Assembly: GCF_964188315.1 (NCBI RefSeq)
Contig: NC_135667.1
Span: 20,212,001-20,276,000 of the forward strand
DNA: 64,000 bases
Origin: Podarcis muralis
Lineage: Eukaryota
Direction of reading: 5' to 3'
The translations under genes were made by a program, and so were the position numbers. This document shows, piece by piece, positions 22,212 through 55,882 of this stretch (the stretch's first letter is position 1; the number at the start of each line of letters is the position of its first letter). A model generated the notes under the pieces. It was not told the origin of the DNA and did no database searches. It saw only the letters and a list, made by a program, of their open reading frames with translations.

Positions 22212-22428
22212 GGCCTGGGGAGAGTTCTGAGGGCCAGATAAGGAGGCCTGCATCTGGCACCCAGGCCTGAGGTTTTCCATCCCTACTCTAACTACTCATC
22301 ATCTTAAAAGAAAATTCACCATGCCTCAGGTTCCCTTAGAATACTAACAATACAGACATCTCTCAGGGAATTTAATATTGAAACCAAGGCCATGTGTAAG
22401 GCAATATCTGACTACTACAATTACTAAC

Positions 22429-22609
22429 CCCTCTTGTCGACAGTCTGAGATCCAATCTTTCATAACTGCACAGAAGGTAGAAAAATCAACAGCAATCCCT
22501 CTCTCTTGAGGGTCCAACCTCTTATATAGAGACCGAAACCTCCAGTCTTCACAGTTCTGCCCTGTCATCTCCTGCAAGTATTCAATGATTCGGAAGACAG
22601 ACACCTCTC
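22429..22609 (-). CDS. KASH5: KASH5 exon (EF-hand-like) GEVSVFRIIEYLQEMTG...LDPQERGIAVDFSTFCAVMKDWISDCRQE
   Basis: Similar to GTVAVAQVLAYLEAVTG...VDLDTFLVVMRDWIAACQ. Phase 1 to 2. Confidence 0.95.
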
Positions 22610-23464
22610 CTATAACCAGAATACAGGTAGACAGAATTACACAGGTAGGTAAAAAACTCAAATATAAAAATTGCATAGAACAATAAATCTGGATTTAGTT
22701 GTCTCTGCTATCTACCAATGCAAGCTATTATGATACGTTTTATATGTCTTTGTTTCTCCAGTTTAGAAAAAAATGAGGCATTTGTAACTGATAAAATCGT
22801 CAGTCATAAATATATGAACTGTATATATAAACTACACATATCTGTATTGTTTTAAAATACCCCAGAGCAGTAGCTCACAAAGCAATTTTGCTTGGTGTGA
22901 AAAGTAATGTGAATTTATATTTAATTTTTAATCCATTGGCTTCTAGTCTCCATGATTAAAGAAAATGAGTGATGTATCAGGAACCAACTTTCAAGAAAAA
23001 TAGGATTTTTAAAGGAATAGTAGCTTTGTACCACTGCTTCCCTTTCCCACCCACTTCCTTCTTATTATTACCTTTTTCTTGTCTTTTCTTCTCTTTCTAT
23101 TATACCTTAAGTAAAATAAATTTATGTAACTTTGAAGTACTGGGAAGGGTCCTGGATAATGTCTATCAATGAATTATTTTTATTTATTTTTTGCACATCC
23201 TAGTCAATAAAACTTTGTCTAAGAAGAAGAAAGTATTCCATCTTTCTGCTAGGACTTATTGTCATTAAAGTTGACCTGGAATTGTGTACTTCTTCAATAC
23301 AGTCATGTTAGGTTCACTGACAAAATGACATATAGCCAAGAGTCTATAATATATAACCTGATGCTAAACTATTCTGAAAGGTATTTGCACATCTTAACAA
23401 AAAACTGATCTCCCAGCAGTTTTGAAGACTGATAGTTTTCAACTGATATTAAAAAACTTTCTAC

Positions 23465-27476: not shown

Positions 27477-28367
27477 CGCCCATGTAGGTAGCTAGCCCTC
27501 TTGTTTTCTGCACCCTCCTCATTGATTTAATTGTCTGAAGAGAACAGTACAATTTACAGTACTGTACAATAAAAAGCACACAAAAAAGCATGCATGCCTT
27601 GTGGGATATCTTTGGGAGAAGAAAAGTCTCAGGAGTAAACCCTACACAACATGGACGTAGCCAGGATTTATGTTGGAGGGGGAAGGCTTCATGTTAGGGG
27701 GAGCAGAAACTTAGTTAAGTATTTATATTGATTGGGGGTGGGGGGCTTGGCTATGCCCATGCTACACAAATCCAGAGTGGAGTCCCAAAGATAGTTGGGT
27801 GGGGCCTTGTATGCCTCTTCCGCAACTCCTGCAGCCAAGCTGGTGCCGAATGTATTGCTCTGCTTTCCTTTGAGGGGGACAGCCCATAAACTCCATACAC
27901 CACCCAGGCTTGCACCCCTTGCAATGTATATACTATAAGCAAGCCTCCCAAAAGCAACTCCTCAGCTTCCTAGTTCTCTTGCCACTTCCTGCCTAAGCTG
28001 AACCATTACCCTAAAAGTGGTACGGAAGATGGGATTTTCAGAATGCAGATGTTCTTTTTAGCTATAAATATTTAACAGTTCCCCCTGTTGAATAAATTTC
28101 TTCCGTGTAAAGAATAAGAGACTTTGGTAATTAAGCAGTGTAGAAATAGCTTAAATAAATAAATCTGCATTGCGAACAAAGCAACATTTGCACAGCTAGT
28201 GGTGTGAATGATTTAATTAACAAAAACTTTTTCTTTTTTGCTGAATGGAATCTAGAAATAAGTGGATTATGAGGGAAAGTACAGAGATTAAGATGATAAG
28301 CATAAAAAGGGTTGTGAGCATTGAAGAGTAACAAGCTATGTAAATTATGGGCCAAAAATAATTGTAA

Positions 28368-28710
28368 TTAGTAAAAGCCAGGCCCAATGTACTGCCCCAT
28401 TTCATTAGCCAATTGCTTGAGTTCCTGGAAATCTGCTTGTTTGGGATCAGCCATATCTTCCTCCCATGGCAACTGCCTTTTCTCGTCATAGTCTTCACTG
28501 AGCCCCTTTGGTTGGCCAATATCTTCCATGGAATAAGGAGATCTGGGCAGACTGACTAATGCTAGTTGGCCATCTTGCACAGAGTCATCATAATAAGCAT
28601 CCTCTTTGTCACGACGCATCAGGATTGGCTGGTAGAAAGAGAGCTGTTGGTCTGGTCTACTAATATCCACACTGTTCTCTGGATTTTCACATGTTGAAAC
28701 TGTTGTATAT
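28368..28710 (-). CDS. DKK3-like terminal exon (YTTVSTCENP...acidic tail...FQELKQLANEMGQYIGPGFY*)
   Basis: ctttctctcctag acceptor; phase 2 matches the previous exon. Supplies the last CRD2 Cys, as DKK3 HSLVYVC does. Acidic tail. Confidence 0.88.
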
Positions 28711-28750
28711 CTAGGAGAGAAAGCAACCGATTGACAAGACTGAATGAGTG

Positions 28751-28760
<10 letters not shown>

Positions 28761-28797
<37 letters not shown>
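28761..28797. repeat. (AT)n microsatellite
   Basis: Visible tandem repeat. Confidence 0.95.
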
Positions 28798-28807
<10 letters not shown>

Positions 28808-28939
28808 ATGTATTTATACACACAGTGCTTTTTTCTAAAAAAAAAATGTTTAGGGATACACTCATTTTCCTACTCATATTGAAATACAGCCCCTCAATGA
28901 GGCCAAACTTAGATTCACAAAATGTTTAGGGGTATGCGT

Positions 28940-29160
28940 ACCCCTTCATCCCCCAGAAAAAAGCACTGAGCACGCACACACACCCCACACACTCTACTTT
29001 TCTGTGTTTAAGATTAGGTTTTTTTACTTTAAAATTATGTGAAAAACTGTGGGTCATCTTATACACAGGGCAAATTCCCCCCTGTTTTCTTAAATTGGAG
29101 TCCCAAAAGATAGGAGGCGTCTTATACATGGGGGCGTCTTATACATGAAAAAATACGGGG
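28940..29160. mobile_element. DNA transposon/MITE fragment (ggcgtcttatacatg repeats, aaaaaatacgg end)
   Basis: Terminal motif typical of TcMar-type non-autonomous elements. Only one end recognised. Confidence 0.45.
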
Positions 29161-29526
29161 GGGTATCATCCCAGTCCAATCAACAGTAATTGCATCTTGC
29201 AAAGTATCCTGAAACAATATGTGGAGCAAATGCAATAATATAAGACTTCATTTATTTTATCTTAAATCAGTCTTGCAAAACAGAGTACAATTTTATTAGT
29301 ACATGGTTCATTGGGGTATTATTATTGTAATTAATTAGTAAATTGTCTTAATGTGATGTACAATAAAAATCAAAACAAAAAAACAAAATCCAACCTAGTT
29401 AAAAACGCAAGAAACAGCAGACAGACTTAAAACAAAATGAAAACAATGCAAAACAGACAGTCTTGCAGCTACTTTAGTTGCAGCTTTCTCTTGTGAAGAA
29501 TTCTACAGAGACAGAATCCTCCTTAC

Positions 29527-29689
29527 CTTTTAGCTCTGCACTTCAGCCCTTGGGCACATGGGCAATACTGGCTAGGTCTGGGAAAGGCTGTGAGGCTGCC
29601 CCAACCCATCAGTCCAAAGAGGGAACTGGTGGGAATCTGGCATACTTCCCCTTCCTTTGGATAAGGAGTGCAGACTGGGAACGAGAGAG
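29527..29689 (-). CDS. DKK3-like CRD2 exon LSFPVCTPYPKEGEVCQIPTSSLFGLMGWGSLTAFPRPSQYCPCAQGLKCRAK
   Basis: Aligns with DKK3 LLFPVCTPLPVEGELCHDP...CPCASGLLC. AG and GTAAGG sites; phase 1 to 2. Confidence 0.95.
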
Positions 29690-30118
29690 CTGTGTTGGAG
29701 ATAGGACAGAGATTATAAAGGATTATGTGTAGAAAATCCACAAAGTAAAATCTGCCTGGAATATCTGCTATACAAGATACACTGGATTGGTTCACACGTA
29801 ACACTAAGACAAAATATGTCATGGCATGAATGAGCTACTATACTGGTGCACATTTAGAAAAATTCAGCCGCTTAGCTCCTCTCCTTGTGAGCTAAACCAT
29901 AGTTAGTCTCTTAGCATTATGTGCAAATCCAGTCTTGTGGTTTGTTTCAGTAGCCCAAACCAAACACAAGCTATAACCAATACCTCCTGCTCTTGGCTTA
30001 CTGATTGTGATAATGAGGACAGGGGTTATATGAGGACCATGGTGTGAGAGGCAAAGATTAACTGTCTCTCCATGTGCACCGTGGTCTCAGTCTGGATTAT
30101 AGTCCCCAGGAATTGGTA

Positions 30119-30452
30119 AAAAGGTAAAGGGACCCCTGACCATTAGGTCCAGTCGTGACTGACTCTGGGTTTGTGGCGCTCATCTCGCTTTATTGGCCAA
30201 GGGAGCCGGTGTACAGCTTCTGGGTCATGTGGCCAGCATGACTAAGCTGCTTCTGGCGAACCAGAGCAGCACACCCGTTGGAATGGTACCTATTTATCTA
30301 CTTGCACTTTGACGTGCTTTCAAACTGCTAGGTTGGCAGGAGCTGGGACTGAGTAACGGGAGCTCATCCCGTCGCGGGGATTCGAACCGCCAACCTTCTG
30401 ATCGGCAAGTACTAGGCTCTGTGGTTTAACCCACAGCGCCACCTGCGTCCCA
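30119..30452 (+). mobile_element. Sauria SINE
   Basis: aaaggtaaagggacccctgaccattagg head. 13-bp TSD ccaggaattggta at 30106-30118 and 30453-30465. Confidence 0.92.
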
Positions 30453-30598
30453 CCAGGAATTGGTACTTTCAGTTTAAAAGCTTTCACACAACTCCCAAGT
30501 AAAGCAGTCAACATCACAAAATATGAGCAGACCAAATCCGAGGGTAGAAGGAAGTAGATTATCACGCCGGAGGCATGAGTACATAAAAACCATCTTAC

Positions 30599-30746
30599 AG
30601 TTGCTGGCGGTGCAACACAGCCCCTGAGCACACTTGTCCCGGCGTGGGTCACATCTTGTTCCGCTCTGACCACGGCTCACACCTTTTGCACACCTGCCCC
30701 CCACACATAGGTATCCCAGACAGCATTCCCTGTCCTTCCAGCATAT
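30599..30746 (-). CDS. DKK3-like CRD1/CRD2 exon ICWKDRECCLGYLCVGGRCAKGVSRGQSGTRCDPRRDKCAQGLCCTASN
   Basis: Aligns with DKK3 LCTRDSECCGDQLCVWGHC...GTICDNQRDCQPGLCC. Phase 0 to 1; canonical sites. Confidence 0.95.
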
Positions 30747-31230
30747 CTAGGAGACAAAGCATGATGATGACACAGCATTTATTTTCTGAAGTTCAAACTA
30801 GAAAATTCATTTAAAATACAAGGCACTACCAGTGAAAAGACCCTGCCTCATTTTATTTATTCAGGATGTGCTACTCAAAAGGCCAGCTTCTGTGTTTGCA
30901 TTTCAAAATATGAGCAGACTAATACCAAAATTGCACAGGACCTTTTCTCTCTTTTTCTGATACCCTTTTTTTCTTTCTCGCTCTTGCTCTCTTCCTGGCC
31001 AGCAGGCTGTCTGTCAGAGGAAGGGCAGATTCCTCTTGCCGGAGGCCTGAACTGATCGCATTCGAGAGCTTTTGAAATTAGGCAGAGGGCCACATGCAGA
31101 CTAGGACTGCAGGTTGCCAGCACTCTTGTGGAAAGACTTTTGCTTTGGAGCCTCTCGTTTTAGAATACCCCTTTCTGCGGTAGAAATATTTCCCAGGGAC
31201 AGTTCTGGCAGCAAAGTTGAGCGTACTCAC

Positions 31231-31323
31231 TGTATTCTTGACCTTACACTGCCGACACCGGGAAGCAAGGAAGGACTTGAAGCAGAACTGGTCCTTTTGG
31301 CAGTCACTGTCACTCACACATTC
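31231..31323 (-). CDS. DKK3-like CRD1 exon ECVSDSDCQKDQFCFKSFLASRCRQCKVKNT
   Basis: 93 nt with the same 31-aa length and Cys spacing as DKK3 ECIIDEDC...CQPC. AG and GTGAGT sites; phase 0 to 0. Confidence 0.95.
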
Positions 31324-32312
31324 CTGCTGGAGAGGAAGGACATATTTTAAAAGGGCTACAAGACCATTGCACTAGCAAGTTCCCTATTTCGTTGCTGGGT
31401 AATGGCTGAATTTAAGACTGCAGTTGGCTTCTGTGGAGCATCTTAGCTGGCTACTAGGATGGGACTTCTCCCTACCTCAGCTCAAACCTGTAAGTTTCCC
31501 ATAGATAGCTCTACATGTAAGAAAAGGTAATAGAGTGTTACTCCTTTTGGAATATTAATGGGTACTGCAAACTTCATTTCTGAATGCACACCAGAATATA
31601 AACAGCTCCATTTCCCATGTATATTCCCAACTAGCATTGTATTCAGTCATAGGGAATTTAACTGTGCGCTTAAGCACAGGCTCCAAGCTCTCCCATTCCT
31701 TGCTTCCCTTGAACTAGGACAGGGGTGGGGAAACTTTTTTCTGCCCAAGGGCCACATTCCCTTCTGGGCAGCCTTCCAGGGGCCACATGCCAGGGGTGGG
31801 GTCAACAGCGGCGACTTACAAAGGCCAGATTCCTATACAACCTGCATCCAGGGAAGCAAGGACCGTAGTTCAAGGGCACATCTTCTGAGGCTGGCAAAAG
31901 CATTCAAGAAGGTTGTGGAGCAGAGCTGGTGAACTCATAGGGAGGGTGTGCAGCCTACAGAAAGTCCTGATGGCTATTTAATGAGGCCTGTAGGGTCACA
32001 TTTGGTCGCCAGCCTGAGCTTCACTGCTCCTGGACTAGGAGAAGCTCTGCTGCAGGCCTTCATCAAGAGCCCTGCTAGAGAACTGTATAGAAACCTATTG
32101 ATAAAGCTTTTAATGTTACCAACACTTGTGTGGAACTTGGAGCCAGTGTGGTGTAGTGGTTAGAGTGCTGGAATAGGACCCAGGAGACCAGGGTTCAAAT
32201 CCCCACTCGGCCATGAAACTCACACTGAGTGACCATGGGCCAGTCACAGTCTTTCTACCTCACAGGGATGTTGTGAGGATAAAATTGGGAGGAAGAGAAC
32301 CAAATATGCCAG

Positions 32313-32609
32313 TGTTATGTACTGAAGTTCTCACCCTGGGCCAGCAGGGGGATACTGTAGATAGTTATGCAAATGAAGGATCGAAAAGTGACGTTCAGTG
32401 ATTGGATAGTTTTGTATGCAAATGAAGGATCGAAAAGTGACATTCCGTGATTGGATAGTTTTAGAAAATGGCAACAGTTGCATTGTTCTGGAGCTCTATA
32501 TAAGCAGGCTGACTGAGCTCCTCAGCCTAGTTCTGTTCTGGCATCTGAATAAAGAAGAGCTGTTTAAAGAATCGCTGTGTCGTCTGACATGTTCACCCAC
32601 AACTTAACA
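32313..32609 (+). mobile_element. Short solo LTR (Gypsy-like) inserted in an older SINE-like repeat
   Basis: TGTT...AACA ends; TSD gccag / gccac. TATATAA at 32497, AATAAA at 32548, and a 49-bp tandem duplication. Confidence 0.8.
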
Positions 32610-34660
32610 GCCACCTTGAGCTCCTTGGAGGGGGGTATAAATGTAATAAATAAAGAAAACAAAAACACAGCAGCCCCAAGAGGCTATCTCGTCACCTCTC
32701 CCACCTCATGGAAGAATTCAGATCAGACAAAAAGAAAGCACCCACACAAGCAGTGCTTGGAGCACATGAAAGACAGTCAGAAAATTGCAAATAAACACCA
32801 GCTGTTTTGCCTTACATGCCACAAATTCTCCTGCAAACTACCTCAGTTTGGAAGCGGCATTTCTAGTGCACAGACGTTTGTCTTAAAATGTTTGTGCCAT
32901 TTATCTCCACAAGAATCCTTCACAGGTTTGGCAAACACAGGATTCCAATGTACAGCACCCGTTTTGAGAATTGTTTCAATTCTTACTCTTACATACAGGA
33001 GACACACACATAAAGCACAGCTGGAAAATACCGTAGTTTTAAGTATGGTCTGGTATGACAGTCAGATGCATAACGATCTCTTGGTGGTTTGATGTTTTTT
33101 CTTCAAAAAGAAGACATAATGTGGGAAACCTCTTTTAGTTCAGGTTTCCTTTTTCGATGCAAGTGTGTAACCTGTTCGATTTGAAAGGAAGAGTGAAGTG
33201 CCAGATAAAACCTCAGAAATTCATTTGGGTGAGTGATTTCCAATGGATGGGGTGTCAATGCCCTGCGTAGGTTTCTGCCTCTCTCCAACATTCATGCACA
33301 GAAAGGTATGGCTTATTTATTTATTTTGTAATTTATTCCAGTCGCAGAGTACAGCTTTTCTTGGTATGGAACTATATAGCGAGCCAAGAACAAGGTTGCT
33401 GTTGAAGCGGCTAGTCATATACTGAGTTTTCAGATTTTAACAAGAATTTGCTTCCTGTTATCAGATTAACAAGTTGCTCTACTCTGTCTCAAGCAGGGTG
33501 GAATTTTGTTCTTGTTTATTTTCTCGCTCTTGTTTTTCTGTAAAAACAATAACAAAAATGATTTAATTTTTATTGTTTTTACAGGGGGGGAAATACAAAA
33601 GAGCATGGTGCTGATAGCACCAAGGTCACAGGTTTGATCTCCGTATGGGACAGCTGCATATTCCTGAATTGCAGGGGGTTGGACTAGATGATCCTCAGGG
33701 TCCCTTCCAACTGGGATTCTATTGCATATGGAATATCTTTATTTAATGTTGAGCATCAATATCAGTACAAATTTATTCAGTCGATTGCTGTTTCCTGGGC
33801 TGGTGACTATCCAATTTAACTCTATGTTTTAATCTAGCTGCTCAGATACCAAATTTTGTTCTGTGTGGAAATGATTCTGCATATCTTTATTTGGAAATTT
33901 CATATATATTTGGGGATGTAAAGTTTTATTCCATGTTGTGAGGCCTTTTGATTATAGACAGTGAGCCTGAAACCAAGACTGATGGGGGAAAATGGGTTAC
34001 CTTGGCACATAACTTTGAATGCCCCAGCACAGACAGATTTAACTTACAGGCCAGGTTTTCGGTCTAACCAACCATTTCCCAGCCTGCTACAAGAAGAAAG
34101 TGCCAGAAAGGGTGTGTGTGTATATATATTTCTCTCTTTTTTCCTTCCTCTCTGCACAGAGACAATTCCAGTCTGTTTTCTTAGAGCCAAATGTTGCTAT
34201 TTCTGAACAGGACTGGGCGTAATCAAAGAGGAGAGCAAAATTGAAGTAACCTGACAAAATTGATTTCAGTGGGGGAGTTGGGCTGCTCTCATTGAAACCA
34301 ACAGGACAAACTGCTCACAGTTTGAGGGTGTAATATCAAACACTGCTGGTAATTACTATAGCTTGTAGGTCAGTGACAATATGACAGGTGTAAGAAGAAT
34401 TATGGGAATTATTGTGGAAATAATAAGAATTATACTCCCTTGCTACCAGCTATGCGTGGGGTGGAACTGCTGCCACCTCTCTCTTTCCCTTCAGATTCAA
34501 CACCTACCTTTTCCACAGTTACATCTGCACCATACATTTAAAGCACATGCCGCTCCTGATAAGAATCCTGTAAGCTGTAGTTTGTTAACAGTGCTGGGAA
34601 TTGAACTCTGTGATAGGTAAACTACAGTTCCCCGAGTTCTTTGGAGGAAGCCATGTGCTT

Positions 34661-34774
34661 CCAAACTGACCAAACTGCGGGAGGTAGTGGAGGACGGAGG
34701 TGCCTGCTGTGCTCTGGTCCATGGGGTCACGAAGAGTCGGACACGACTAAACGACTAAACAACAACAACAACAA
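34661..34774 (+). mobile_element. BovB/RTE LINE 3' end
   Basis: ggggtcacgaagagtcggacacgact plus a (caa)n tail. 8-bp TSD atgtgctt. Confidence 0.85.
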
Positions 34775-35260
34775 ATGTGCTTTAAATGTATGGTGTGGGT
34801 GTGATGGTAGCTATGCTTAAGAACATTTCACAGCAGTCACCCATGTTTCTTCCCTCCCTGCGTTGTTTTCCCACTGTTGATTTTAAATTGTAAGCTCCTT
34901 GCAAGCAGAGACCTGTGTATGTTGCCTAGGTGCACTGTTACATGCAGTGGTAGCACAGGAAGATTTGTTGTTGTTGTTTTGAATCCCGGCCAGGATCCAG
35001 GTGGTTCTATCTGAGCTATTCTGTATTCAAGAACCTGATTCTATAACATTAACTTTAGAAAAGAAAAATACAAAATGCTCGTTCTCAGGGTTTTGTTTTC
35101 AAAAGGAAAGATTTTTATTTCAAGAATTTGAGAGAAACTCTCTTCTCCTTTTGGAGGATTCTCTCCCCAGCCTGCCACCCTGTGGATGTGAAAGAGGAAA
35201 TAGCTAGGAAACCAGAGACATTCTCTGCTGCCCAGGCAAATTAGAGGTTTCCCTCCTGCC

Positions 35261-35596
35261 TTATATTTTCCGCCAGAAGAAAAGGAAATGATGCTTTCGT
35301 GGGAGGAGCTTGCGGTTTGGGGTGACAGGCAGGGCCTTCTTCTTGATGGGGTGGGGGGCTGTCAAAAGCCCATTCCGAATGGCCAGCAGCCTGTGCCTCC
35401 TGTCAGTGGCCGGCTCTTCCTTTTCCCAGTTGGCTTCGGGGATGGGCTTGCTCTTAAGGTGCTGGGGCAAGCGGAAGATTAGAAAGGTCAGCCTAGGCCT
35501 AGGCTGGGGTGGGCCCAGCTTGAGGAATCTGAGCCCAGTGCTCTCTCTGTCTGCCTCAGCGCCATTTTCGTCCTGACTAGCCACTGGCTTTTTCTC
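35261..35596 (-). CDS. DKKL1: DKKL1-type terminal exon (EKKPVAS...PRLTFLIFRLP...TDRRHRLLAIRNGL...KLLPRKHHFLFFWRKI*)
   Basis: Motifs match mammalian DKKL1 PRVAFWIIKLP, EKRHRLQAIRDGL and RLSPRKTHLLY. Phase-0 acceptor tctttccag. AATAAA on the minus strand at 35114-35119 followed by a U-rich element. Confidence 0.93.
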   Translation of the reverse strand, partial: EKKPVASQDENGAEADRESTGLRFLKLGPPQPRPRLTFLIFRLPQHLKSKPIPEANWEKEEPATDRRHRLLAIRNGLLTAPHPIKKKALPVTPNRKLLPRKHHFLFFWRKI

Positions 35597-36323
35597 CTGG
35601 AAAGATACAGATAAAATGCAACCAGGGTGAGGATATTACCTCAGTGGTTTGTGGGAATCAGCCTGAGAAGGACTTTATGCTTAGAATGAGAAGTGGGAGG
35701 GTGTCCAAGCTGGGGGTCCACATTCTTTTACCCCCTCCAGGAGAGAAGAGGGGGTCAGAGGAAGAGGAATTCCTGGGGTAGGGAAAAGACCAATCTATGG
35801 GAATAGGGAGAAAGAGGGGCAATCTGTGGCCCTCCAGATGTTGCTGGGCTCCATCATCCCCTGACCCCTGGTCCAGAGGACCAGAAGTTCACCCATCCCT
35901 CCTTTTGGGGAAAGCAGAGGTACACTAGTCTAACAAGGTTTATTGGTCATGATAGTTGAACTGAACTGCCAGTATCAAATGCTGGGGACAGATAGCACAG
36001 GGCAACTGCAGCCTTCCATCCCTACTTATAAACTTCCCAGCGTAAAAACCCACCTGTGTAGATCAGGCTAGTTTCTACCCCTCCCTATTCTCTATCCAGG
36101 GAACTGAGAGGCATGATCAGAGTTCTAAGACATATTCAAGCCCGGCATAGACATGCAAGGGGGATATGAAGTATGCCCGCAGAAGGAGAGAGGTCTAAAG
36201 ACCAGACAGAGAGGTCTGGAGGGATGCATCTAGACTCTTGCCACACACACCAAGTCACACGCAACCAAAAAATTAGCTGAGGAAAGGTGACTGGGCTTGT
36301 TACCCTCCTGAGCGTGCACTGAC

Positions 36324-36422
36324 CTCATCCTCTTCCTCCTCCTCTGGGCGGGCGTCTGACTGTTCAATAGAAGTCACCGTTTTCTCTGAAAACACCATCT
36401 CTCCTGTACGGTTATCAGTCAT
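36324..36422 (-). CDS. DKKL1: DKKL1 soggy exon MTDNRTGEMVFSEKTVTSIEQSDARPEEEEEDE
   Basis: Matches DKKL1 MTDNKTGEVLISE and DKK3 ITNNQTGQMVFSE. Phase 0 to 0; GTCAGT donor. Confidence 0.95.
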
Positions 36423-36742
36423 CTGCATATTTTGAGAGAACAACATTAAGATTGCATGGGAGAGACAGAACAAGTGAAGAAGCCTCCTTACTTTTAAACA
36501 TTTGTGAGGCGGCAGCATGGTTGACGGCAGAAACATCCTCATGGCCAAGGCTCCACAGAGCTATGGGGACAGTTGACTTGGCTTCACAGGGGCAAGGAGG
36601 TGTCCTCAAGTGCCTGCACTAGACTTGCGACTCCCTTAGGAAAGAGATGGAGAGCCTATGCCTGTCCCGTCAGCCCCAGACAACATGGCCAGGGGTCATG
36701 GATTTTGGGAGATGTAGTCTAGCAACACCTTATTCCCCTCAT

Positions 36743-36743
<1 letters not shown>

Positions 36744-36793
<50 letters not shown>
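36744..36793. repeat. (AAT)n microsatellite (tail of an adjacent repeat)
   Basis: Visible tandem repeat. Confidence 0.9.
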
Positions 36794-37557
36794 TTATTAT
36801 TATTTGTACCCCGCCTATCTGGCTGGGTTTCCCCAGCCACTCTGGGTGGCTTCCAACAAAGATTAAAAATACATCAAAATGTCACACATTAAAAACTTCC
36901 CTGAACAGCGCTGCCTGTTTAAAGATGCATGATGCCCCTTTAAATGTACAGTGCTGATGGGGCCCTACTCAGATTACACCCATGGAAACTAATGAATCCA
37001 AGTTAGTCATGTCCATTAACTTCAGTTGGTCTGCTAGCATGGGACAGAACCCATAGTCTCCAAACAGCATGCACCAGATTATAATACCAATGGTGGACTG
37101 TGGGAGGGAAAGAATACATGGGGAAAGATTATTCCATGGCTTTGTTGGGATGGTTGGTTGCTTGAGTTGCAATATATACATCGAGAGCCATTTGTCAGAA
37201 GGGGTGAAAGCTGACAGGAACCATGTCAAGGTTCAGCCTTGCCAGATAAGCAACTGGGAGTCCAGGACCTAAGATCTATGCCAGGCTGGCCAAAGGGGTT
37301 CCGCTGACTGTGGCTAAGTATCTAAGCCGTCCTCTGCTGCCTTGTGCATATATTTTATATGTTACTGACAAAATGCCTTTTAGTCTAGAATTTGATGTCC
37401 CCAAATGGCTACCCAACGATAGGGTCGGCCTGGACACCACCAGCTACACTGATCAGAACTTGCATCCTCAGGTATTGAATTGCCAGCCAGTGAGGTAAGC
37501 TGAGCTTAGCTATCCATGGTTCTTCATTTTGGTTTTGGTTTTCAATAGCTCACTCAC

Positions 37558-37692
37558 TTTGCTGATTTCGCGGTGGCTGTAGACGGTGGCATTCCCCACT
37601 TTCCGTTGGTGCTTCTCCTCGTTGTGATAGTTTGAGGGCAGCTTGCTGATATCCACAGAGGGCTCAAGCTGGTCTTTCCCCAGCACATCCTC
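37558..37692 (-). CDS. DKKL1: DKKL1 soggy exon EDVLGKDQLEPSVDISKLPSNYHNEEKHQRKVGNATVYSHREISK
   Basis: LPSNYHNE...KVGNATV..HREI is the soggy-domain signature (DKK3 LPPSYHNE...KVGNNTIHVHREIHK). AG and GTGAGT sites. Confidence 0.95.
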
Positions 37693-39719: not shown

Positions 39720-39857
39720 CCGGCTCTGCTCAAAGATGTTGCGAAACTCCTTGAAGAGCCTCTCCACGCTGGGGGGCAGGAAGGCAGCAGATGCCGTGGT
39801 CCTTCCTTGCATCAGAGCTGTCAGGCACCAGAATCCCCACACCAGCGGCAGCAGCAT
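39720..39857 (-). CDS. DKKL1: DKKL1 first coding exon with signal peptide MLLPLVWGFWCLTALMQGRTTASAAFLPPSVERLFKEFRNIFEQSR (whole exon 39720-39897)
   Basis: Long pyrimidine tract plus AG at 39898. Hydrophobic leader; GTAAGG donor in phase 0. Confidence 0.85.
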
Positions 39858-45179: not shown

Positions 45180-45900
45180 GAGTGACCCTGCCCGCATCTT
45201 GAGGAAGTTAACTTGTGCGTCGTTCCTTGTTTTGCAACATTATCACCCGGTTCCCTAAGAAAAGGTATCGCGCGCCCTTTCCTAGTCCCGTTTCCTGCTT
45301 GGCGGGGTGTGTGCGTGTGTTTTTGTGTGCGTGTCCTGTCTGAACACGAAACTCCGCCCCTTCCAGCCCTCGGCTCCTCCCCTCGTGGAACTGACTCACT
45401 GCTGCTAATTTAATTCCTCTGCTCATTCCAAGGATTCCAGAGGAAAACTGTCACCTTTCCAAAATACCACGCAGGCCTGTTGCTCCTCTGCGCGCACCAC
45501 CACGCTGCTCCTCTTCCCATTTCCAATCCCAAGGAGTGGGCAGGAACCTCCTGGATGAGTCAAAATTAACCCTAGCGGTGAAGAGCTTTTATTCTCTTTT
45601 TTCACGCCCCCCTTTCCCCCCCCCCCTTAAAGCAAAGTTCAGGGAAAGTTTCTCCTTTACGTTCTCCCTCCCCCCCCCCCCGCCTTCACTAGCGCGCACA
45701 AAACCGGCCTCTTGGGTATCTTCTGGAAGTAAGTAATATTTCCTCCCCTCTTCCCAATCGTTCGTTCTGTTTAATTTCCTACTTGGGAGCAAGCCCTGAC
45801 AAGGAAGATTTCGATTTAAACGTGCATCTGGTGGTGAGCTGTGATTTAGCTTTTGATTTTGGTTTGCAGGGAAGAAAAACGTTGCAACTTTTCTTCTTTT
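45180..45900. promoter_or_regulatory. CpG-rich region, likely the divergent DKKL1/TEAD2 promoter; candidate TEAD2 exon-1 donor gtaagt at 45729
   Basis: CpG-enriched, repeat-free stretch between the two head-to-head genes, with a GC box (ctccgcccc). Confidence 0.6.
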
Positions 45901-55689: not shown

Positions 55690-55882
55690 ATAGAGCCTGG
55701 CAGCTGGGGCGAGGGGGCCAGCCCCTCTGGGGAGATGGGGGACACTGGGGAGAAGGGTCTGGACAACGATGCAGAAGGGGTCTGGAGCCCAGATATTGAG
55801 CAGAGTTTCCAGGAGGCCCTGGCCATCTACCCACCCTGTGGGAGGCGGAAGATCATTCTTTCGGATGAGGGGAAGATGTACG
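55690..55882 (+). CDS. TEAD2: TEAD2 first coding exon (I/M)[63 protein letters not shown]; whole exon starts at 55673
   Basis: Invariant TEA-domain sequence. ATA start in accATAg context; in-frame ATG at 55735. GTAGGT donor in phase 1. Confidence 0.95.

Follow-up and report, generated by a model that had tools for sequence, protein, structure and literature searches.

A probable DKKL1/Soggy orthologue with Dickkopf-type cysteine-rich exons in the lizard Podarcis muralis

Exons and transcripts of the gene

We analysed a 64,000-nucleotide stretch of the Podarcis muralis genome (contig NC_135667.1, positions 20,212,001 to 20,276,000; hereafter, the window), in which four minus-strand exons encode two Dickkopf-type cysteine-rich domains (CRD1 and CRD2). 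These four exons are, with high confidence, exons 4-7 of a single seven-exon minus-strand gene (39857 to about 28200), the lizard orthologue of DKKL1/Soggy and an ancient paralogue of DKK3, with two splice routes after exon 3 (Table 1). DKKL1/Soggy is described in the literature as a Dickkopf relative without cysteine-rich domains. An earlier model's reading of the letters and open reading frames (hereafter, the sequence-only reading) had placed the four exons downstream of DKKL1; they belong instead to the DKKL1 orthologue itself, being spliced straight to its exon 3.

Table 1. Coding exons of the gene and flanking exons in the window. Coding exons 1-7 correspond to A-G on the minus strand; ALT is the alternative terminal exon.
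Feature	Coordinates	Strand	Length and phase	Content	Evidence
Exon 1 (A)	39720..39857	-	138 nt, ends in phase 0	Begins with the start codon (39857); putative signal peptide, first part of Sgy domain	Sequence; match to Zootoca isoform X1 N-terminus
Exon 2 (B)	37558..37692	-	135 nt, the size of DKK3 exon 2	Sgy domain, LPSNYHNEE motif, N-glycosylation sequon NAT	
Exon 3 (C)	36324..36422	-	99 nt	End of Sgy domain; donor is the isoform branch point	Joints 36324 to 31323 and 36324 to 35596
ALT exon	35261..35596	-	111 codons and stop	Alternative terminal coding exon; AATAAA at 35119	Joint 36324 to 35596 in runs X1 and X9
Exon 4 (D)	31231..31323	-	93 nt, phase 0	First half of CRD1, 5 Cys	Sequence, Pfam; spliced to exon 3 in runs X5, X7, X9 and X1
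Exon 5 (E)	30599..30746	-	148 nt	Second half of CRD1, linker, first 4 Cys of CRD2	Sequence, contigs, alignment
Exon 6 (F)	29527..29689	-	163 nt, starts in phase 1	CRD2 core with DKK3-type loop insertion	Sequence, contigs, PDB and fold searches
Exon 7 (G)	28368..28710	-		Last CRD2 Cys, acidic tail, conserved C-terminal ...QELKQLA..MGQY.GPGFY, stop	Sequence, contigs
KASH5 exon (EF-hand_9)	22404..22619	-		Downstream neighbour, same strand	Pfam E 8e-14; tblastx to the KASH_CCD gene adjoining DKKL1 in Pogona and Eublepharis
TEAD exon (TEA domain start)	55750..55869	+		Upstream neighbour, head to head	Pfam TEA E 2.1e-7 and motif scan

All four CRD exons lie where the sequence-only reading had put them. 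Each has an AG in front of it, and a GT comes after each of the three internal ones. Their lengths are 93/148/163/343 nt and their start phases 0/0/1/2. Joined, they amount to 747 nt, an open frame of 248 codons and a stop, and the 217 residues previously given for this frame were a miscount. The cysteine count of that reading was accurate: the frame holds 20, ten in CRD1 and ten in CRD2, and all 20 are invariant across an alignment of 28 long-form DKKL1 and DKK3 sequences spanning both paralogues. CRD1 is recognised by Pfam as Dickkopf_N (PF04706), matched over its full length (1-51/51) by residues 1-51 with an E-value of 6.8e-11. The acidic tail that had been noted is likewise present, as a 105-residue C-terminal stretch with 22 D+E against 10 K+R. 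The 3' untranslated region (UTR) of exon 7 reaches about 28200, with an ATTAAA at 28217. A long (AT)n/(AG)n microsatellite (28744-28815), which was skipped as a repeat in read mapping, lies directly upstream of the exon 7 acceptor.

The N-terminus encoded by exon 1 is hydrophobic (MLLPLVWGFWCLTALMQG...), with ASA-AF after it; read by eye, it resembles a signal peptide. Exons 1-3 all end in phase 0 and join exon 4 in frame, giving a protein of 372 residues in the order putative signal peptide, Soggy domain, CRD1, CRD2 and acidic tail. The ALT exon yields a short, Soggy-type isoform of 235 residues. This exon is homologous to the C-terminal tail of armadillo DKKL1 (BLASTP E 4e-10). It sits between exons 3 and 4 at each of the six reptile loci and is the last coding exon in the bat. 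Splicing from the exon 3 donor leads to two products. On the first route, exon 3 is joined to the ALT exon with its own AATAAA, producing a 235-residue Soggy-type protein like mammalian DKKL1. On the second, the ALT exon is skipped and exon 3 joined to the CRD exons, producing a putatively secreted 372-residue protein with a putatively glycosylated Sgy domain, CRD1, a short linker, a predicted colipase-fold CRD2 with a DKK3-type loop, and an acidic tail ending in GPGFY.

Contigs from sequencing runs of the same species, labelled probable RNA, support these junctions. Exon 7 was found in many such runs. In contigs of X1, X5 and X9, which come from three studies, exactly the intervals 28710|29527, 29689|30599 and 30746|31231 are skipped, demonstrating that the CRD exons are transcribed and spliced; the introns between them have no contig depth except at interspersed repeats. 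In the stretch 31225-37224, the direct joint of exon 3 to exon 4 was present in contigs of X5, X7, X9 and X1, and the joint of exon 3 to the ALT exon in those of X1 and X9 only. Overall, the long form was the sole or major isoform in three of these four runs. Exon 3 is where the unitigs of X1 and X9 stop. A 1359-nt contig of X5 extends a further 352 nt 5' of exon 3, a length that would accommodate exons 1 and 2 with about 79 nt of UTR.

A repeat with a tRNA-like GGTTCGAATCC box is interspersed in the window in at least four copies, at 30117-30451 (in the exon 5-6 intron), 18531, 48984 and 49443. Its RNA-contig depth reaches about 2e5 with many variants, and it is therefore probably a short interspersed nuclear element (SINE); ARAGORN called no tRNA in the intronic copy. 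Very high contig depth was also seen in all RNA runs at the intronic stretches 28842-28948, 32225-32624, 33625-33824, 34625-34824 and 36625-37024, which are presumably further dispersed repeats whose expression comes from other genomic sites.

Constraint, losses and orthology

To measure constraint, we computed ratios of nonsynonymous to synonymous substitution rates (dN/dS, or omega) with the Nei-Gojobori method (NG86), aligning the codons of the window with those of Sceloporus, Eublepharis, Tiliqua and Alligator and leaving Pogona out. For all squamate pairs, omega was 0.13-0.26 in CRD1-CRD2 (p for omega <1: <= 7e-6) and 0.16-0.28 over exons 4-7 (p <= 2e-9). Squamate values were 0.19-0.34 for the C-terminal tail and 0.22-0.35 for the Sgy domain, and the ALT exon gave 0.17-0.42. 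The CRDs are thus under purifying selection, as had been proposed. These values bear directly on an account in which the CRD exons are a transcribed relic, spliced in while unconstrained and heading for loss as in turtles and mammals. A trend of loss does run across lineages: the exons are decayed in turtles and gone in placentals, Pogona is without exon 4, and Anolis is represented by short-form models only. However, omega in the CRD exons (0.13-0.28, p down to 1e-15) is as low as or below that of the Sgy domain, all 20 cysteines are kept in every squamate or alligator sequence with complete CRD exons (all but the Pogona P0011 and Paroedura P0008 models), and the frame is open in 5/5 species tested. 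Together with the isoform share in the runs, these observations led us to reject a neutral relic, which we consider very unlikely.

At the orthologous loci, intact CRD exons are present in squamates and alligator, and a turtle with broken ones serves as a natural control for lost constraint. At the locus of the sea turtle Lepidochelys olivacea (L006 15900-19320), exon 5 has an in-frame stop, only the first half of exon 6 is left, and exon 7 is frameshifted. This fits the published description of turtle DKKL1 as having the Sgy domain only (PMC10967326). The gene models of two further turtles, Platysternon (P0015) and Caretta (P0030), splice around damaged CRD exons. In the bat Pteropus, the 6.8-kb interval from DKKL1 to KASH5, 820 bases of it N, yielded no CRD exon remnant, and Dickkopf_N was found in none of the 120 placental DKKL1 proteins listed among 206 matched.

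A second alternative is that downstream of DKKL1 lies a separate DKK3-like gene, made up of the CRD exons and driven from a promoter and first exon of its own. RefSeq or ab initio gene models of Paroedura (P0010, 250 aa; P0008) and Phrynosoma (P0004) indeed start shortly ahead of exon 4, with N-termini of unrelated sequence, and a separate four-exon, CRD-only 'DKK3L' gene is listed in a paper on soft-shell turtle (PMC10967326). Yet those N-termini lack a signal peptide and resemble artefacts of gene prediction, and the turtle DKK3L may be another locus. In the window, exon 4 opens at an acceptor AG with neither a Met nor a signal peptide, and the contigs, which join it directly to exon 3 in four runs, contain no other 5' partner for it. 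Given these joints and the missing start, we rejected an independent gene, leaving it the slightest of chances. As for the odd starts of the Paroedura and Phrynosoma models themselves, they could be prediction artefacts or could mark an internal promoter in some species.

We next consider where the single seven-exon gene belongs in the Dickkopf family. Its neighbours are a TEAD gene and KASH5, also known as CCDC155, and the order TEAD, DKKL1, KASH5 recurs in Sceloporus, Eublepharis, Alligator, Tiliqua, Pogona, armadillo and the bat Pteropus. According to a passage of PMC10967326 that cites Kaneko and DePamphilis (2000), mouse Soggy and TEAD-2 share such an arrangement. In the spacer between DKKL1 and TEAD, a block at 45385-45600 of the window shows tblastx conservation against the matching spacer of Pogona and Sceloporus; this block may represent either a 5' exon of TEAD or a regulatory element common to these species.

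Family members were gathered by a full HMMER scan and name look-ups; a word-based homologue search with the 248-residue piece reached no DKK3. We inferred a maximum-likelihood tree from 46 sequences and placed its root at a tunicate DKK3-like protein. In this tree, the DKK3 proteins of Zootoca, Sceloporus, Eublepharis and Hemicordylus fall in a true DKK3 clade (support 99/98) that excludes the window protein. The latter sits in a clade (97/89) with armadillo DKKL1, the squamate and alligator long forms and the reptile short forms, which also holds amphibian 'DKK3-like', coelacanth and Callorhinchus proteins. Constraining the squamate long forms to group with lepidosaur DKK3 cost 302 log-likelihood units in an approximately unbiased (AU) test (p about 1e-50). 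Because of the neighbours, the tree and the AU test, we regard the gene as the DKKL1 orthologue and an old DKK3 paralogue, and not a recent copy of the animal's true DKK3. The claim of an extra Dickkopf protein is also upheld, since in the closest relative, Zootoca, a DKK3 is present besides, in the separate clade. That the gene might be the true DKK3 of this lizard, or a copy of it made recently in its lineage, is suggested by its DKK3-like seven-exon architecture, phases and cysteine spacing and by several entries in its clade named 'dickkopf-related protein 3-like', but this is refuted by the two clades and the AU test, conflicts with the separate true DKK3 of Zootoca, Sceloporus, Eublepharis, Hemicordylus and Ambystoma, with the Soggy-type ALT exon and with neighbours TEAD and KASH5, whereas DKK3 is reported to be tightly linked to USP47 (in the turtle paper, PMC10967326), and has practically no probability left.

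In the same tree, both teleost paralogues, dkk3a and dkk3b, group within DKK3, and the DKKL1 clade is without teleost or bird sequences. Teleosts and birds may have lost the DKKL1 gene altogether.

Fold, likely action and meaning

Sequence searches of the PDB aligned CRD1 with the solved CRD1 of DKK4 (9x64, 5o57) and CRD2 with DKK1 and DKK2, with phmmer reaching DKK1 CRD2 (3s8v, 3s2k, 5fww) at an E-value of about 1e-3. An AlphaFold model of CRD1-CRD2, made with a 28-sequence alignment for the 96%-identical Zootoca sequence, had a mean predicted local distance difference test score (pLDDT) of 81. Its best Foldseek matches were again DKK1 CRD2 (3s2k, 3s8v; template modelling (TM) score 0.68-0.69), followed by DKK2, DKK4, MIT1 and Bv8; colipase itself came lower, at rank 47. 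CRD2 is therefore predicted to adopt the colipase-type fold of DKK1 and DKK2, in agreement with the sequence-only reading.

In structures of DKK1 with LRP6, the HFWSKICKP stretch of the DKK1 CRD2 contacts LRP6. The corresponding stretch here is LLFPVCTP and is accompanied by a long loop insertion, both exactly as in DKK3. Because LLF replaces HFW as in DKK3 and the loop insertion is present, we infer that the long form would act as a DKK3-like extracellular modulator and not as a DKK1-like blocker of LRP5/6. The long isoform ends in the motif (F/Y)QELKQLA..MGQY.GPGFY (window 28368-28440), which is kept with variants from Callorhinchus to lizards (C-termini of P0001-P0031) and is absent from DKK3. 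This C-terminal motif may be a binding module for some partner.

Several points weigh against this picture of the gene and its product. The type of the sequencing runs is a guess ('RNA?'), their contigs being taken as RNA because of their spliced form, and the raw-read RNA run X21 showed almost no coverage of the exons, so that expression is not ubiquitous. The inclusion of exons 1 and 2 in the X5 contig was deduced from its length. Pfam made no CRD2 call, the structural model is of a relative's sequence and not the window's own, and the mode of action is argued by analogy with DKK3. Finally, Pogona vitticeps (L005 17100-18640) is without exon 4 and has no assembly gap there; CRD1 is therefore not indispensable in every squamate. 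In the Pogona RefSeq model, exon 3 is joined to exon 5, leaving CRD1 with five cysteines.

The gene is real, functional, expressed and constrained, and it represents an extra Dickkopf rather than a new kind of molecule. The main value of the locus lies in the light it sheds on the origin of Soggy, which, to our knowledge, the literature leaves unexplained; it could plausibly have started out as the alternative last exon of a full DKK3-type gene. A broader account, to which we give an even chance, is that an ancient DKK3 paralogue had two isoforms and that only the short one survives in mammals, as Soggy/DKKL1. The long one would make up a fifth full Dickkopf ligand, with a conserved GPGFY C-terminus not shared by the others; chimaeras, the coelacanth, amphibians, squamates and crocodilians would still produce it, and turtles and mammals would each have lost it separately. 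If so, the long form would have its own, so far unstudied function. No paper found by our literature search contains this account. Lizards and many other non-mammalian vertebrates have one full Dickkopf beyond the DKK1-4 set studied in mouse and human, of relevance to work on Wnt and TGF-beta in reptile and amphibian models.

Comparison with known Dickkopf genes

The closest counterpart of the window's gene is the RefSeq entry 'dickkopf-like protein 1 isoform X1' of Zootoca vivipara (XP_034990645.1, P0001; 373 aa), which matches it at 96% identity across the CRD exons and runs collinear with it along its whole length. It shares the seven coding exons, the Sgy domain, CRD1, CRD2, the acidic tail and the C-terminal GPGFY. 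Similar RefSeq models exist for Rhineura, Hemicordylus, Sceloporus, Eublepharis, Euleptes and Alligator sinensis. These entries are automatic predictions without a published description; the junctions in the window are backed by transcript contigs. At the loci of Sceloporus, Eublepharis, Tiliqua and Alligator sinensis, we recovered the seven-exon layout exactly, with CRD exons of 93/148/151-163/328-349 nt. The sequence-only reading had implied something special to this lizard, which does not hold, the architecture being annotated in many squamates, alligator, amphibians, coelacanth and chimaera.

The CRD-bearing architecture is thus already in the automatic annotation of many species, under inconsistent names, and our literature search found no paper describing a CRD-bearing DKKL1 or its evolutionary conclusion. 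Members of the long-form DKKL1 clade from Pelobates (P0031/P0329) and Latimeria (P0323) are entered as 'dickkopf-related protein 4-like', 'dickkopf 1 isoform X2' or 'dickkopf-related protein 3'. The gene matters for annotation because databases call it 'DKKL1', 'DKK3-like', 'DKK4-like' and 'DKK3'.

The likeness to DKK3 (Dickkopf-3/REIC) in exon sizes and phases, stated in the sequence-only reading, is confirmed by direct comparison: the window's exons measure 138/135/99/93/148/163/343 nt against 216/135/87/93/145/157/223 nt in Sceloporus DKK3, with identical 135-nt and 93-nt exons and identical intron phases (0,0,0,0,0,1,2). All 20 cysteines align, and in both proteins a Sgy domain precedes two CRDs separated by a short linker. 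The two nevertheless differ in several respects. They belong to separate ancient clades, and the lizard gene is flanked by TEAD and KASH5. The lizard protein has one more residue between the first and second cysteines of CRD2, its last exon is much longer (343 versus 223 nt), and it ends in GPGFY where DKK3 has ...FGDE[IM]. The lizard gene also has the alternative Soggy-type terminal exon.

Mammalian DKKL1/Soggy, an acrosomal protein, occupies the orthologous locus between TEAD2 and KASH5 and has a homologous Sgy domain. The end of the lizard short isoform is like that of mammalian DKKL1, with the motifs PRL.F, RHRL.AIR.GL and RK.HF. The placental protein is without CRDs, whereas the lizard gene also makes a CRD-bearing long isoform. 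The definition of mammalian DKKL1 by the absence of both CRDs therefore fits only the 235-residue short isoform of the lizard.

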